From NCBI RefSeq assembly GCF_018350175.1, contig NC_058382.1, positions 14,570,001 to 14,634,000 on the forward strand: 64,000 nt of DNA, read 5' to 3'. Each line of letters opens with the position of its first letter. Position 1 is the first letter of the stretch. A program made the translations under genes and the position numbers. Below are positions 10,903 through 63,155 of this stretch, in pieces. Below the pieces are notes generated by a model that saw only the letters and a program-made list of their open reading frames with translations, made no database searches and was not told where the DNA came from. This stretch comes from Felis catus (Eukaryota).

Positions 10903-12789
10903 CAGTTAGTTTTAGAGTTTAAATTTTTTTTCTTTATGTTTATTTTTGAGAGAGAGACAGAGCGTGAGCAGGGGAGGGGCAGAGAGAGGGAGACACAGAA
11001 TCCAAAGCAGGCTCCAGGCTCTGAGCTGTCAAGAGCCCAACTCGGGACTTGAACTCACGAACTGGGAGATCATGACCTGAGCCAAAGTCGGACGCTTAAC
11101 CGACTGAGCCACCAGGCGGCCCTGTTACTTTTAAATTTTAATGTTATTATAACATCATTTAAATAATTTGGAAGTTTTTCCTTTCCTAAGTTCTGGAACA
11201 CCTTAAAATCCACTGGAATTGTCCTGGTGAGGTTTGATAGCATTTCCTTTGGGACTGTCCAGGCTGGTGATTGGGGACAGTGAGGGTGAGAGTCCTGATG
11301 TCCCTTTCCCTACTTTCCCCGATGGTAAGAGCTGTAGATTTTGAGGTACTTAGAATTACAAAAGTGTCCACACTGAGTCAGAATGTAGCATTTTTCCTGA
11401 CTTTATTTTAATGTAAGTTTTTTTTCTTTTTTTTAATGTTCATTTATTTATTTTGAGAGAGGGCACGTACCAGGGGAGGGGCAGAGAGAATCCCAAGCAG
11501 GCTCCACGCCATCAGCACAGAGCCCAACAAGGGGCTCGATCCCACGAATGGTGAGATCATGACCTGAGCCGAAACCAAGAGTCGGATGCTTAACCGACTA
11601 AGCCACCAGGGGCCCCTTTCCTGACCTTCTTGATTAAATGCCTTTCTTTACACTCAGTGGTAACAGAGGGGAGTTGCTGAACTTGGAGAGTGTTATGCGA
11701 TAAATAGAAGCACGTGACCTGTAAAACTGCAGAATAGTCTTCGAGAAGCATGTGGTGGGATCGCAAGGTCGGAACCGTCTCTCTGGGTTCAGGAAGTCAG
11801 CCTGGAGTTTCTGCTTATCAGGTTACCCACAGAGGCTGCTTATTCTCCCGAGTTCTTCCAGGATCTGGCCTGAGACAGAAATTGCAGGTTTCTGCCCCGC
11901 AGGGAAGCTGAACTGGGGTTTAGAGAAAAACGAGGTTTGTTGCCCAAACAGGAAGCATTGTGATAACTCAGGTTTCCACAGTTCTAAGCTGCTTCGTCAA
12001 ACGTTGTGTCCCTTAGTTTGCCCAGAAAAGGACACTGAGGCTTAGAAGGTCAAATTGTTTTTCCAGATCCATCTGACTCCAAATCGCACCAAGGGGCAGT
12101 GACCTAACCGGGCGTTAGCCTCTCAGGAGGGCAGGGAGTGGGACCGGGGGCAGGAGGGTGAACATGAAGAGCATCACTCGTGGTGCCAGGTGTCTTGGGA
12201 TCGAATTCCGATTTTGACATCCATCTGTGAGGCCCCAGGCTTATTACTCAATGCCCGGTTTCCCATAAGTTTATGCCACCCTGCTGCTTCTACATCTTTC
12301 TGACTGTAATCTTGTAATAGAGGTGAAATATATAAGCTTTTGGAATTTCTGAGGAGGGGAACACAAGAATCTAGAGTCCTACACCAACGCACATCCTTAG
12401 AATACATAAATATTGTCATGGAAACCAAATTAAGATTTTTTTAATGAAAATCAATACATGGGGTGCCTGGCTGGGTCAGTCGGAACAGCATGGGACTCTT
12501 GATCTCAGGGTCATGAGTTCAAGCCCCATGTTGGGTGTAGAGATCACTAAAAAGAAATTAACCTAAAGAGGCGCCTGGGTGGCTCAGTCGGTTGAGCAAC
12601 TGACTTCGGCTCAGGTCATGATCTCGCGGTCCGTGAGTTCAAGCCCCGCGTCGGGCTCTGTGCTGACAGCTCAGAGCCTGGAACCTGCTTCGGATTCTGT
12701 GTCCCCCTCTCTCTCTGCCCCTCCCCAGCACTCTCTCTCTTTCTCAAAGGTAAATAAACATTAAAAATTTTTGAATTAAAAAAAAAAAA

Positions 12790-14939: not shown

Positions 14940-15200
14940 CCTCCCCACCTCGACCCCCGACATCCCCTCCCAGGAGGAAGACAGATCCACCAGGCTGCAG
15001 GGGAGTTTGAAGTGTTTGTGAACGGACATCTGGTCCGTTTGAAGAAGGTGCTGGGACCCTGGGGGTGGGGTGGGGAGACCGACAGACAGACTGTGCCGAA
15101 AGGTGATGGCTTTGTGGGTGAGGCCAGGCTGCAGAAAACTGTGAGCATCATCGGCGAGGAGAGCAGGTAACAGGCAGTGGGCCGGCGAGCTGGAGGCGAG
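14940..15200 (+). pseudogene. Inverted partial duplicate of SELENOV (end of intron 3, exon 4, shortened intron 4, exon 5)
   Basis: Exon-4 copy at 14974-15047 is 74 nt (vs 75), has a 1-bp deletion and encodes EEDRS/QAAGEFEVFVNGHLVRLKK. A 51-nt intron remnant has lost its AG acceptor. Exon-5 copy at 15099-15170 encodes KGDGFVGEARLQKTVSIIGEESR*. Confidence 0.9.
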
Positions 15201-16386: not shown

Positions 16387-17150
16387 CTCTCTGCCCCCCT
16401 CCCTCACACTCTCTCTAAAAATTAAAATTTTAAATTGAAAAAAAAAAAGTATCCCAAACCAGGGCATAGGAAATGAAGATGCCACAAAAGAAAGAAAGAA
16501 AGAAAGTGGGGCACCTGAGTGGCTCAGTCTGTCAAGCGTCCAACTTCAGCTCAGGTCATGACCTCGCAGTTTGTGGGTTCGAGCCCTGCCTGGGGCTCTG
16601 TGCTGACAGCTCAGAGTCTGCAGCCTGCTTCGGATTCTGTGTCTCCTTCTCTCTCTGCCCCTCCCCCACTCCTGCTCTGTCTCTCTCAGTCTCTCAAAAA
16701 TAAATAAACATTAAAAAGAAAGTGACTCAACAGCACCAGGAGTTGAGGCTAGCCAACCAGGAGCAAACCTGGGGAGCAACAGGAAAACAGGGCTAGGCTT
16801 CTCTTCAGGAGTGTTCTTCTTCTTTTTTTAATGTTTATTTTTGAGAGAGGGAGCGAGACAGTGGGTGAGCAGGGGAGGGACAGAGAGAGAGGGAGACACA
16901 GGATCCGAAGCAGGCTCCAGGCTCCGAGCCGTCAGCACAGAGCCCCATGCGGGGCTCGAACCCACGGACCGTGAGATCGGGACCTGAGCCGAAGCCGGAC
17001 ACTTGAACTGACTGAGCCACCCTGATGCCCAGGATTAGGCTTCTCTCCAAACCTGCCCTTCCTTCCCCTCCCCACCGCCTCCCTTCTCACCTCAGGAGAC
17101 AGTGTGGCAACATTAGACGAGGTCAGGCCAGAACAGAGAGGCAGATTGTA

Positions 17151-17257
17151 TTTATTTCCGTTTTCACCCCTCCCCGACTCACCCCAGCCCCAGCTCCCAT
17201 CAGAAAAGGACCTGACTTGGCAACATTTCAGCCCTTCCCGGCATCCTGCTGAGGCTC
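17151..17257 (-). promoter_or_regulatory. SELENOV: SELENOV terminal 3'-UTR exon with SECIS-like hairpin (non-canonical core) and poly(A) signal
   Basis: Acceptor ...tttcag at 17258-17259. Then ATGC-C-GGGAAGGGC-TG-AAA-TGTTGCCAAGTCAG-GTCCTTTTC-TGAT, where GGGAAGGGC pairs with GTCCTTTTC. AATAAA at 17151-17156. Confidence 0.85.
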
Positions 17258-17820: not shown

Positions 17821-20075
17821 GAGGTAACGGCTACCATGGTTTCTGCTTGCCAGAGGAGAAGACCAAGGCAGAGAGAGGTGAAGGCATCTGCCTGAAGTCA
17901 CACAGCCAGTAAAATAGGGATTTGAAGCCAGACAATACTGGCGTAACCATTGTCTATCCTTCCGTTTTTTAATACAGTTGATTGTCGTTCTTGTCCACCC
18001 AAAGCTCTCTCCCCATCATCCCTCCCCATGGGCTTAGGGAGACCAACTCCATTCCCAGTTGGAATAGCCACATGACTCAAGACTGGCCAATGAGAGCTCC
18101 GTGTTCCCTTGGGCCTCGGTGATTGGTTCAGGGATGAACATGTGACCTAATCCAGGCCAATAGGGATTTACGCCACCAAGATAGGGAGCCTCTCTGAAAA
18201 TAAAGTTAGCCCAGGGAAAAAGCAGAACACAGAGTAAGGGAGGGTCAGATTCTCAATGCCAACATTTTGCTGCCTGGATCAAGCCATTCCTGAAGCTAAT
18301 TAGCCCCTAGACTTTTATTCTCATGAGCCAACTTTTTTGTTGTTGTTAAGCCAATTTGAACTGGGTTCTCTGCTGCAATAAGAACATTCATGACTTATTC
18401 CAATAACAACTGCTGTTCACTTACTGAAGAAGGGTTTTGACAAGCTCTTAATTCACATCTAACATCACCAGCTTCAGCCTTGTGTGGCTGGCTGGTGGAT
18501 CCAGGATTTGAACCGAAGTTCCTGTGACCCTGGAAGCTGCATGCATAACTACTCTGGTATTCTGCGTATTGGCAGCTGTGAGAAACAGACGTCTCCTCTG
18601 CCTCCCCTGCCCCCATCCCCAGCATGGCTGCTTGAAAACAGACCTACTAAGTGCCTGGCACATAGTAGGCATTCCAAAATACTGTCTGTAAATTTTTAAA
18701 AAACAACTAATATAATGTGGACATTGTCTGGATCCTAATTCCCAACCCACCACCTCTAAAAAGATATTTTTGAGACACTTGAGTAGATCTTAGATGCCAT
18801 TAAGACATTTTAAAATTTTTGTCGAGGGTGGGGGCGCCTGATGGCTCAGGTGATGCAGCATGCAACTCTTGATCTCAGGATTGTGAATTCAAGCCCCACA
18901 TTGGGTGTGAGCCTACTTAAAAAAAATCAATAAAATAAAATTTTTGTTGGGGGTGAAAATGGTCTTGTACTTCTTTTAAAAACTTAATTTGTTGGGGCAC
19001 CTGGGTGGCTCAGTCAGTTAGTTAAGCATCCAACTCTTGATTTCAGCTCAGGTCATGATCCCACCATTTGTGAGTTCAAGCCCCATGTCAGGCTCTAGGC
19101 TGACAGTGTGGAGCCTGCTTGGGATTCTCTCTCTCCCCCTCTCTCTCTGCCCCTCCCATGCTGTCTCTCTCAAAATAAACTTTAAAAATAAAATAAGAGA
19201 TGCCTGTGTGGCTCAGGTCATGATCCCACAGTTTGTGAGTTTGAGTCCTGCATCGGGCTCTGTGCTGACACTCGGAGCCTAGAGCCTGTTTCAGATTCTG
19301 TGTCTCCCTCTCTCTGCCCCTCCCCCGCTTGCACGTTCTCCCTCTTTCTCTCAAAACTAAACATTAAAAAAATTTTTTTAATAAAATAAAAACTTATTTA
19401 TTAGAGATGCATACTGAAGTATTTACAGGTGCAATGACGTGAGGTCTGGAATGTACCTTCAAACGCTAACATGCCAAAAAAAAAAAAAAGTGGAGAGGAA
19501 AATAGATGGAGAAAGTCGGTAATAATAGTTGACCTGGTTGACGAGCACACGGGGCTCCCTGTACGGGGCTCGCAACTAGGGTACGTGTCTAAAATTTTCC
19601 ACCAAAAAGGCGGGAAAAAAATCATAGCTTCCATTTATGTAAACGTCTAGAAAGTGCAAACTAATCTAGGAGGACAGAAAGCAGATCAGGGGTGGCCGGG
19701 GACAGGGCAGAGGGCAGGAGAAATTGCTGAAGGTGCCCTCTCAGTGGTCTTAAAAATCCAACATCTGGGGCACCTGGCGGGCTCAATCAGAAGAGCACGT
19801 GACTCTTGAGCTCGGGGTTGTAAGTTCGAGCCCCACGCTGGGTGTGGGGATGACAGAAATACATTAACGAAATGAAAATGCAAACTAAGGGGCGCCTGGG
19901 TGGCTCAGTCTGTTAAACGGCCGATTCTTGGTTTCGGCTCAGGTTGTGATCTCAAGGTTCTCATGGGATCGGTCCCCGAGTCACGCTCTGTGCCCCAAGC
20001 ACAGTTCTCCCTGATCTTAACAAGGAGGACTCACTGAGCTAGGTAGGACTGGGAGTAGGATGTTTCTGACTCCAA

Positions 20076-20203
20076 NNNNNNNNNNNNNNNNNNNNNNNNN
20101 NNNNNNNNNNNNNNNNNNNNNNNNNNNNNNNNNNNNNNNNNNNNNNNNNNNNNNNNNNNNNNNNNNNNNNNNNNNNNNNNNNNNNNNNNNNNNNNNNNNN
20201 NNN
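20076..20203. other. Assembly gap (128 N) in SELENOV intron 5
   Basis: Run of N. Confidence 1.
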
Positions 20204-20720: not shown

Positions 20721-22058
20721 AAGCTCTTTTGAAAAAAATGTCATTGACATACACTGAGCCCTTCTTTGAGCCATGTACATTTACTACCTTAGATGAGGCA
20801 TCTCCTGGAATCATCTCAACAACCCCATTTTCCAGATGAGAAAACTGAGGTTCAGAAAAGGGTGTGGGTGACCTGCCCCGATCTTAACAGGGAGGACTGG
20901 CTGAGCTACGTTGTGAGTAGGTTGTTTCTGACTCCAAGACAGCGCCCGCCCTGTGTGCTGCGCACCCTCAGCCCCGCCTCCGCCCCGCCCACCTCGCCTC
21001 CCTCACCTCCTAACCCTCACCTTCGGCCGGTTGCCTGCTACCTTTTCCTAATTTCCTCATCGATAGTGCTCACAATCTTCTGCAGCCTGGCCTCATCCAC
21101 AAAGCCATCGCCTTTCTGGGCACAGAGGGGAAAGAGCAGGGACATGTATGTCTCCCACCCCCCTCCACCGCCGCCCCCCCAACCCAGCACCGCCCTCCCT
21201 CCCGGCCCCGGGACACACAATCATAATCACCTTCTTTGAATGGACCAGTTTTCCATCCACAAACACTTCAAACTCCCCTGTAGCCTGGGCAGATCTTTCC
21301 TCCTCCTGGGGAGGGAATGTTGGGGGTGGAGGGGAAGGTGAGAGCTCCTCTCCAAGCCCCTGGGGTCTGGGGACCCTAACTACCCTCCCCCTCACTCCCC
21401 CAGGCCACCGGCACACTCACAAAGCGTAGACAATTTGGAAATTGCAGCTCCAGACTCTTTCTCAGTAGAATGTACTGCAGGGAGGAGATGGGATCATGGG
21501 TTCACAGGATCAGAGGGTCATGGGGTCAGGGGAGGGGAAACAGGACCTCCTTCCAGACTTCCTGTCCAGCACTCCCCCCACCTCCAAAGTCAAAACTACT
21601 CACCCGAAGGCTGTAGCTTCAGAGGCCGCTGGACGCCGAGGGAAAGAGAAGGGAGACAGAGAGATGGAGAGAAGATACTCAATCAGTATCTCCCCAGGCC
21701 CAGAGGGAGCCTGTGAACACCGGACTCCGATCCCATCCCATACTGCTAGCTCACCCAAGGCAAAAAAAAACCACAACAGTCCTCTGTATGGTCCACAAGC
21801 CCCCACGGTATCTGCCCCATTGCCTCCATTCACTCCCTGGCCCGCTGCTCCAGCAAAGGAGGGAGGGAGGAAGCTCTTTTGAAAAAAATTTCATTGACAT
21901 ACACTGAGCCCTTCTTTAAGCCATGTACATTTATTACCTTAGATGAGGCATCTTCTGGAATCATCTCAACAACCCCATTTTCCAGATGAGAAAACTGAGG
22001 TTGAGAAAAGGGTGTGGATGACCTGTCCCAATCTTAACAGGGAGGACTGGCTGAGCTA
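20721..22058 (+). repeat. 188-bp direct repeat pair (20721-20908 and 21871-22058), plus a partial third copy at ~20012-20075
   Basis: Manual alignment gives 8 mismatches in 188 bp, no indels and an exact offset of 1150 bp. Confidence 0.92.
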
Positions 22059-22363: not shown

Positions 22364-24523
22364 CACAAGCGGGGGAGAGTCAGAGAGAAGGCGAGACAGA
22401 ATCCCAAGCAGGCTCTGCACCATTAGCGCAGAGCCCAGTGTGGGGCTGGAACCCACAAACTGCAAGATCATGACCCGAGCCAAGATCAAGAGTCGGAAGC
22501 CTAACCGACTGCACCACCCAGGTGCTCCAGCACTGATCGCCTTCTACGATGTGAGATAATGTACTGTGTGCCATATTTATTGTTCATTCCAGCCCCCTCC
22601 ACACCAGAACGTGAGTGCCACACGGGACAGAGATCTCTGTCTTACGCACTCCTGTGTCCCTGGTGCCGAGGACAGGGCCGGGCGCAAGGTAGGTGCTTAA
22701 TAAATAGTGGTTGAATGAATGAATTAATGAATCCATGGAGTCAAAGAAAGCTAGAAAGGAGGAGAAGGGCAGAGAAAGAGGGGAAGATGAGGAAGCGGGG
22801 AGAAGGGGAGAGAGGCATTTACATCGGGAAAGGAAAAGAGACAGTGAGTTGGGGAGACAGAGCAGGAGAGACCACCTGGGCAGAAAAAATGGGGGGGGGG
22901 GTGGGGGGAGTGAGACTGGGAGAGATAAGGGGGAGAGAATGTTCTAAAGCAGGAGAGAGACATGGGGATTGGGGGAGGTCCCTGCTGTTACTGTTGTCGT
23001 GGACCCAGAAGACCCAGCTCTGGGACCACCAAAGAGAACGGAAGCCAGCCTCCTTCCGCCTCTGCACTTGCGGTTCCTCCTCCCCTTGCCACCTCGATTG
23101 CCCTCCCAACACCCAGCTTTTCACGTGGAGCCCCCTTCTCATCACCGCCTGAGAAAGGCCATCCCTGACCACCCAGTCTGGCATTCCCCCACCCCTCCCG
23201 GGCCTGGCTTTGGGTCTGCGTGGCCCAGCCTGGCCTGGCGAGAAAAGCAGGTGGCGCTGTTCAGCACTCCATCCATCCTCAGAGCAGGCCTGGCCCTCGG
23301 GGGGCAGCACACTCCAAAATGAGTAAATGAGACTGAATGAATGAAGCTCAGAGCAGAGATTTGAAGCCAACAGTTCCCCAGCCCCAGAGAAAATGATAGG
23401 TGGAGCCAAGTGTCCAACTGGGAGTGGGGACTCCCTCCCCTCACCCTATCTTCAAATCCCGGAAGCCCCAGCGCCCACCCCCTCTGGGCTTTCCCCAAGG
23501 GGAGGAAGGCAGGTGTGGCCGGGGACGCCCCTCACCAGTAGATCACTCGAATCAGGATCTTGCTGTCCTCCGGTAAGTTCTCGAAGGTGGAGGCGAAAGC
23601 GGTGGCGGAGGAGTCGGTCTCCAGGATGGGCGCGGGAAGAGAATCGGGAGTGGAATCCATCAACTTGGTGGCTGATGAGTCTGCCCTCGAGGTTGACCCA
23701 AGGGTGGGCCCCAGGAAATCAGCGGCCGTTGGAGTGAGGGCAGGAAGGGCCTCTTGGGTGACAGAGCCGAATCCATTGGCGACTGATGGGAAGTGCTTCA
23801 CACTGGGTGTGGGTGAAAGATCCTTGTCCGGCCACACAGGGGGCTCCGGAGCAGATTCTGAGGCTGGATCCAAAGGTGGGGCTGAGTTCCCTAAGGATTC
23901 CGACGCAGGGGCAACGGCTGTGATCGGGACCCGACTGGGAATGAGGTTGGGGCTGGGATCCGGGCCAGAGTCGGGGTCCTGATCGGAGTGGGCGTCCGGA
24001 CCCGGGTCGGGATCTGTACTGGAGTCAGGGTCTGGACCCGGGTCGGAGTCCCGACGGCAGTCGGGGTCTGGACAGGAGTCTCAGTCCAGACTGGGGTTGG
24101 GGTTTGGACCAGAGTCGGGGTCTGGACGAGGGTGGGGGTCCAGGCTGAGGCCGGGGTCTGGACAGGAGTCGGGGTCTGAGCGGGACTCTGGGCCCGGGCC
24201 GGGACCGAGATCCGGACGGGATTTGGGGCCCGGCCCGGGGTCAAGGTCTGGGGGGGATTTGGGGTCCGGGCCGGGATCTGGACGGGACGCGGGGCCCGGG
24301 CGGGATTCGAGGCCCGGGCCGAGATCTGGACGGGATTCGGGATCTGGACGGGATTCGGGGCCCGGACCGGGGTCTGGGTGGGATTCCGGGTGCGGGCTGG
24401 GGTCGAGGCCCGGGCAGGAGTTGGGATGCGGACCGGGATCGAGGACCTGACCGGGGTCGAAGCCCGGACCAAGGCCAAGACCCGGGCCGGTGAGGGATTT
24501 GGGGCCCGCGCCTGGTTGTTCAT
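21038..24523 (-). CDS. SELENOV: Selenoprotein V, apparently disrupted in this sequence (frameshift in exon 1)
   Basis: Exon 1 24523-23536 (MNNQAR... Pro/Thr repeats ...KILIRVIYC). Exon 2 21628-21604 (C-G-L-U-SYSLR; Sec TGA at 21621-21619). Exon 3 21474-21421 (YILLRKSLELQFPNCLRF). Exon 4 21305-21231 (EEERSAQATGEFEVFVDGKLVHSKK). Exon 5 21115-21038 (KGDGFVDEARLQKIVSTIDEEIRKR*). All junctions are GT-AG. Exon 1 is 988 nt, one base short of the phase-2 junction. Confidence 0.9.
23950..24500 (-). repeat. GC-rich degenerate tandem repeats encoding the Pro/Thr-rich SELENOV N-terminus
   Basis: Recurrent 18-nt-like units encoding (V/A)QTPTP, VRTPTP and QIPNP. Confidence 0.8.
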
Positions 24524-25261
24524 GGGCAGCAGGGGGCCGGGGGGGGGGGGGCGGGGTTGGGATCCCGCGGCGTCCTCCTTCCTTGGGGCGGGGAGAGCCT
24601 CACGCACACCAGGGTTCTAAAATGGGAGAAGACCACAAGGGGGCACTGTTACATGGTGTTCCACGCTGTACACAGGTTCTACTGCGCTGGGCCTCCAGAT
24701 CTCACCTAATTCCTGAACCCTACCTTCAAGGCAAGGAACACAGAGATTGCTCCAGCGTTCCTCTCACTATCGCTAACATTCAGGCCTTCAGTATGTTTCT
24801 TGAGTGCCTGCTGTGTGCACGGTCCTGTGCCGAGTGATTCTGGGAACAGAGCCCTGATCAGCAAACCCCTGGTCCAGTGATCAGGTTCCCTGCCCAGTGG
24901 GGGAAACATAGCCATCAGCAACCAACAACAGCCCAGTGTGGCTGGGCTGGAGTAGGGGAGGCACAGGCAGAGGGGTCAGAGACAAGGCGAGAGAGGCACA
25001 GGAGCCTGCAGAATCCCAAAAGGTGCTAGAACCAGCCTGGGGCGGAGGGGGCTCCCTGAAAAAATAACTGGGTGGTCAGGAGAAAACTAAAAATAATAAC
25101 TAGCAAAAATAACAAGAGTTTGCAGTTACACAGTGCTAAGTGCTACACATATAAATAACCACAGCTAGTAAGTGGCACAGCCAGGATTCAAATGGAAACT
25201 GTCAGGCTCCAGAATGCTGGTACTTAACCACTCTGCAAATGGCCCCATCGCCCTGTGAGCT

Positions 25262-30855: not shown

Positions 30856-38771
<7,916 letters not shown>

Positions 38772-53229: not shown

Positions 53230-63155
<9,926 letters not shown>

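Follow-up and report, generated by a model that had tools for sequence, protein, structure and literature searches.

The window, by which is meant the whole stretch of 64,000 nucleotides of Felis catus DNA that was analysed, carries on its minus strand what is, on the grounds of its sequence, the orthologous six-exon SELENOV gene of this felid. The gene lies directly downstream of DLL3 and on the same strand, with the DLL3 exons at 38771-31100 (-) and SELENOV at 24523-17135 (-). Its structure was obtained through tblastn with SELENOV proteins, followed by direct reading of the DNA, and the exons are as follows:

23536-24523, minus strand: coding part of exon 1, with ATG at 24523-24521, Pro/Thr repeats, the SELENOV tail and the TG of a split Cys codon; donor GT at 23535
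21604-21628, minus strand: exon 2, which completes the Cys codon and then encodes G L U S Y S L R; Sec codon TGA at 21621-21619
21421-21474, minus strand: exon 3, 18 codons
21231-21305, minus strand: exon 4, 25 codons, alone approximating Pfam Rdx
21021-21115, minus strand: exon 5, 25 codons, stop TAG at 21040-21038, a short part of the 3'UTR and donor GT at 21020
17135-17257, minus strand: exon 6, 3'UTR with the SECIS position; AATAAA at 17156-17151, 3' end approximate

Gene Structure and Identity

The coding sequence occupies exons 1-5, the SECIS position stands alone in exon 6, and the Cys codon of the CxxU motif is split over exons 1 and 2, giving a SELENOW-like layout of six exons as has been described for SELENOV previously (PMC3316567). 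Every acceptor is AG and every donor GT, leaving all splice sites of the gene intact. The CxxU motif is formed from the TG of exon 1 and the C that opens exon 2, followed by GGC CTC TGA, in which the TGA (21621-21619) is in frame. Exon 1 encodes a long Pro/Thr-rich N-terminal extension, the 210 repeat codons of which align with the N-termini of the dog and bat proteins and of P0002, a carnivore SELENOV carrying PF10262, and both the N-terminus and the tail of this exon match SELENOV of dog, mink, lynx and others. When the exons were searched singly for Rdx (PF10262), exon 4 reached 22.1 bits (E 1.8e-4), just under the cut-off of 22.6, and exons 3 and 5 were too short to score. In tblastn against P0002, exon 3 was 80% and exon 4 96% identical, and exon 5 aligned closely with the C-terminus. 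The initial annotation had named the gene SELENOV, and the tblastn matches to SELENOV proteins, the splice sites and the CGLU motif with its TGA bear this out.

The gene resembles intact mammalian SELENOV, as represented by dog (P0003), mink (P0004), bat (P0009), camel (P0007) and a lynx fragment (P0001), in its adjacency to DLL3, its Pro/Thr-rich exon 1, the split Cys codon and the CGLU motif, and its exon 6 likewise begins 13 nt before the position of the SECIS core. It differs from them by one frame break in exon 1 and by a SECIS core of AUGC instead of AUGA.

Reading Frames in Exon 1

The break in exon 1 is defined by a premature stop and by the first start codon available beyond it in the frame of the SELENOV tail:

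23891-23893, minus strand: premature stop TAG, ending the frame of ATG 24523 after 210 codons
23658-23660, minus strand: first ATG of the SELENOV tail frame, with T at -3 and G at +4; the Met is shared with lynx

The frame of Pro/Thr-rich six-residue repeats begins, on the minus strand, at ATG 24523-24521 and is closed after 210 codons by TAG 23893-23891. The SELENOV-like remainder of exon 1 is read in a different frame, which a TGA at 24083-24081 closes upstream and which stays open from there to the donor after 23536, with its first ATG at 23660 and a SELENOV-specific tail ending K-I-L-I-R-V-I-Y, and no one frame spans the distance from the start codon to the end of the exon. The uninterrupted reading frame from ATG to stop that is a trait of functional SELENOV is consequently absent, and the coding exons sum to 988 + 25 + 54 + 75 + 75 = 1217 nt, which is 2 mod 3 and exactly 1 nt short of 406 codons, so that a single-base deficit explains the whole break. 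These readings agree with the initial annotation, in which the ATG-24523 frame was taken to stop at this TAG after 210 aa and to continue in another frame, both of which were re-read here in the DNA, and in which one added base was held to restore a protein of 406 aa. As both frames are open over 24080-23894, the sequence of the window alone places the shift only to within these 187 nt.

Rescue of the frame through a start codon in the tail frame upstream of the break was considered and rejected, given the TGA at 24083-24081 and the lack of any ATG in that frame before 23660. Programmed frameshifting was also rejected, as the site is without a slippery heptamer.

Placement of the Missing Base

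The sole felid SELENOV protein in the protein collection searched is P0001 from Lynx canadensis, a fragment of 213 residues; a SELENOV of cat or Panthera, or an ORF-type protein from independent cat contigs, was not found in that collection. Residues 16-79 of P0001 track the ATG frame of the window as far as GGG 23932-23930, residue 79 being G, and residues 80-210 track the other frame from GTC 23930-23928, residue 80 being V, so that the window codons for residues 79 and 80 overlap by one base (23930). Since the lynx protein has both the G and the V, and these cannot be obtained from the window by skipping bases, the lynx has one more base at this place, and the difference would most simply be GGGG in lynx against GGG in the window:

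23930-23932, minus strand: frameshift site, a G run (GGG; CCC on the plus strand) one base shorter than in the lynx coding sequence

Lynx canadensis thus reads in frame through the site, and the lesion is not one held in common with this related species. The interval of 23891-23960 given for the break in the initial annotation does contain the site, but the CC at 23946-23945 that it had proposed for the insertion does not hold, as the lynx protein puts the site 14 nt downstream; both placements restore an identical length.

The lynx model starts in frame upstream of the ATG, right after a TAA at 24651-24649 of the window, and enters the repeats near 24121, so that an intron within exon 1 (24602-24121, -), bypassing the ATG, is implied. 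At the matching places the window offers a good donor (TGC/GTGAGG, near 24602) and an acceptor (GTCCAG/ACC), and the intron may be either a real 5' isoform or a modelling artefact. As a means of rescuing the reading frame it was set aside, because the acceptor of the lynx model is upstream of the break.

Sequence Context of the Frameshift Site

The site is flanked by a tandem array and lies within an inverted repeat:

23968-24470, minus strand: tandem array of 18-nt period, encoding the six-residue Pro/Thr units, with a G+C content of 66-78%; its end is 36 nt short of the shift site
23969-23984, minus strand: 5' arm of the inverted repeat, in which CCCC faces the GGG of the other arm
23922-23936, minus strand: 3' arm of the inverted repeat, in which the shortened G run lies

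The shortened run belongs to a 16-nt stretch that copies the adjoining repeat unit in inverted orientation and forms the 3' arm of the hairpin; the 5' arm has a run of four bases, and in the predicted fold one C of the 5' arm is bulged or unpaired, with a modest z of -1.9. The G+C content around the site is ~70% and the sequence is hairpin-forming, and an inverted-repeat setting of this kind is prone to slippage. Twelve consecutive C were also observed at 24540-24551 (-), in what is presumably the 5'UTR, 17 nt ahead of the SELENOV start codon; errors in length would be expected much more readily there than in the three bases of the frameshift site.

Homopolymers in G+C-rich, hairpin-forming stretches are where long-read consensus calling and short-read polishing most frequently go wrong, and false frameshifts in G+C-rich exons of long-read assemblies have reportedly been encountered, for example by Watson and Warr (2019) and Kim et al. 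(2022). It is a real possibility, somewhat less probable than a genuine deletion, that the animal has GGGG and that the reference under-called one G, in which case exon 1 would be open and would encode a protein of 406 residues. The change resembles such false frameshifts in being a one-base difference in homopolymer length in G+C-rich, repeat-adjoining sequence, here beside the 18-nt array and inside the 16-nt inverted repeat, and the retention of a four-base run by the other arm, the open frame of lynx, the intact and conserved state of the remaining gene without an excess of changes in the window lineage, and the absence of a published felid SELENOV loss all favour it. It is unlike them in that the run is of just three to four bases, which is short for a homopolymer error, and in that a second lesion of another type is found in the same gene. 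G+C-rich sequence elsewhere in the window, in the DLL3 core and in SELENOV exons 2-5, is also free of frameshifts, which speaks against an error.

The DLL3 core is intact, as judged against deer and camel proteins and, for the later exons, against the human DLL3 sequence. A one-base shift in DLL3 is confined to a read-through tail after the donor near 31200, which has a stop besides and lacks coding conservation. Frameshifts in the window were found only at weakly constrained places. The initial annotation had cautioned that a similar indel in DLL3 hinted at sequencing error, but this caveat is weak, as the shift is restricted to that non-conserved tail, and for the same reason the DLL3 shift was rejected as a control for assembly errors. 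Should the SELENOV break nonetheless prove to be a consensus error, it would usefully illustrate how a gene can falsely appear lost where an exon is G+C-rich and hairpin-forming.

SECIS Core in Exon 6

A substitution is present at the other end of the gene. Exon 6 starts at 17257, and 13 nt into it, where the AUGA of the SECIS core is expected, the window reads ATGC (17244-17241, -). According to Mariotti et al. (2012, PMC3316567), SELENOV exon 6 begins on average 13 nt before the SECIS core. The 3' side of the element has the expected TGAT and the stem folds, whilst C occupies the position of the A in the tandem G-A pairs, and the gene is therefore without the AUGA / GA kink-turn core that is a trait of functional SELENOV. 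A permissive Rfam scan at E up to 1 did not find a SECIS, although the Rfam SECIS model is weak and this result alone is little proof. The defect had been reported in the initial annotation, and the letters at the core position together with the 13-nt spacing agree with this. Two lesions at critical sites of one gene, differing in kind (an indel and a substitution), are hard to explain through random consensus errors, and the SECIS substitution in particular is left unexplained by errors of the indel type.

The SECIS core also bears on whether the gene could still be productive from a downstream start. A product of ~118 aa had been proposed from the in-frame ATG at 23660, and the codon count from ATG 23660-23658, which is in the SELENOV frame, is indeed 118. 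Under this reading the frameshift would be real, yet a SELENOW-sized selenoprotein of 118 residues would be made through leaky scanning, reinitiation at a TGATG overlap or an internal transcription start, the N-terminal extension being dispensable. The downstream domain is intact, the context of ATG 24523 is weak (C at -3, A at +4), four ATGs lie between 24660 and the end of the exon of which only ATG 23660 is in the SELENOV frame, and this ATG overlaps the stop of the preceding ORF of 38 codons, all of which would accord with such a product. Reinitiation after an ORF of 210 codons is inefficient, however, and ATG 23660 is itself in a weak context with T at -3; its Met is also present in the lynx with its open frame and is thus not a response to the break. 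With an ATGC SECIS core, moreover, the UGA would not be readable as Sec and the product would end after ~44 residues. We regard a functional short selenoprotein as very improbable.

The ORF of 38 codons begins at ATG 23776, and the overlap of its stop with ATG 23660 as TGATG (23658-23662, -) is probably due to chance.

Divergence Downstream of the Break

Exons 2-5, the Sec codon, the splice sites and the stop codon are intact and conserved. In the Rdx part, 9 of 68 positions separate the window from dog, and 11 separate mink from dog. Against lynx, 9 of 195 aligned residues differ, 2 among the 64 that precede the break and 7 among the 131 that follow it, and when the changes after the break are polarised on dog, mink, camel and bat, ~2 fall on the window lineage and ~3 on lynx, with 2 ambiguous. 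No sign of relaxed constraint or of long neutral decay is apparent at this level, as changes on the window side are not in excess, in a comparison of few changes with one lynx fragment. This lack of long neutral decay implies that the lesion, if real, is young, and the open frame in lynx would then suggest that it arose recently, after the split from Lynx.

The same signs of a very young lesion, namely intact downstream exons and no excess divergence, would also be expected of a break that is segregating as a polymorphism or strain-specific allele and is unfixed. This is a special case of a real deletion and, given that the deletion is real, is considered rather unlikely.

Discussion

Taking the above together, we infer as the most likely reading, with a probability of roughly one half, that the base is missing from the animal itself, a genuine deletion of one base having occurred recently, after the split from Lynx, in the sequenced individual or its lineage. 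If this is so, normal translation from ATG 24523 would exit the SELENOV frame at codon 198 and stop at TAG 23893-23891, and the product would be a Pro/Thr-rich peptide of 210 residues without the thioredoxin-like CxxU domain. A stop that lies far upstream of exon junctions leads to nonsense-mediated decay, and as the premature stop is far upstream of five exon junctions, the mRNA should be a target of this pathway; such decay is predicted here from established knowledge. With the frameshift and the replacement by C of the essential A in the SECIS core, SELENOV would be a unitary pseudogene of recent origin, too young for its downstream exons to have decayed.

It may be, and this is put forward tentatively, that the cat lineage has lost SELENOV as a selenoprotein since the Lynx split by way of two independent hits, one being the loss of a base from exon 1 and the other the substitution of C for A in the SECIS core. 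Pseudogenisation, as had been suggested in the initial annotation, is plausible rather than demonstrated: the frame break and the ATGC in the SECIS argue for it, whereas the intact exons 2-5, Sec codon and splice sites and the open frame in lynx argue against it.

Among mammalian selenoproteins SELENOV is the least conserved, and its loss is on record for gorilla, as the initial annotation had also mentioned, and for toothed whales (PMC3316567, PMC13134290), a history that favours a real deletion. No report of a felid SELENOV loss was found in the literature, in which the published losses are those of gorilla and toothed whales. Two selenoproteome surveys that include Felis catus list no felid SELENOV loss, the profile used covering the SELENOW-like part only and so being blind to the site of the break. 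As in those earlier losses (Mariotti et al., 2012, PMC3316567; BMC Genomics 2026, PMC13134290), the gene concerned is the same young, testis-specific and fast-evolving one, and it is disabled in a single lineage in which the paralogue SELENOW remains. The gorilla and toothed whale losses have been corroborated by further assemblies and RNA data, whereas the cat case consists of one assembly, one missing base and one SECIS substitution, in an otherwise intact gene whose frame at this site is open in the sister genus Lynx.

No mammalian selenoprotein is younger or less well understood than SELENOV, which is testis-restricted and has been lost at least twice. If the loss proposed here is true, it would be the third independent mammalian loss of SELENOV, after gorilla and toothed whales, and would be dated after the Lynx split, strengthening the case for SELENOV as a dispensable gene that is repeatedly shed. 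It would also offer a natural knockout in a tractable domestic animal, and with it a handle on the role of SELENOV in spermatogenesis and selenium economy.

Other Elements in the Window

In the DLL3 tail at 31130-31210 (-), past the donor GAG/GTAGCT, the one-base shift is seen relative to the deer and human tails, and a TAG is present in the shifted frame. The tail of the long DLL3 isoform looks unconstrained or decayed in this genome, with the core intact.

Downstream of SELENOV, tblastn revealed an inverted, diverged and partial copy of exons 4-5 at 14991-15167 (+), with an intron-like spacer and a stop. A long palindromic element at 16629-16909 matches Rfam MIR7533 on both strands at 77 bits, against a gathering score of 230, and is probably an inverted-repeat transposon just past the 3' end of SELENOV. 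Masked runs of N occupy 20076-20203 and 62821-62952. The tRNA-like matches at 12465-12657 and 19772-19844 (+), one of which is in SELENOV intron 5, score 27.7 to 29.7 bits against a gathering score of 29 and are most likely tRNA-derived SINEs.
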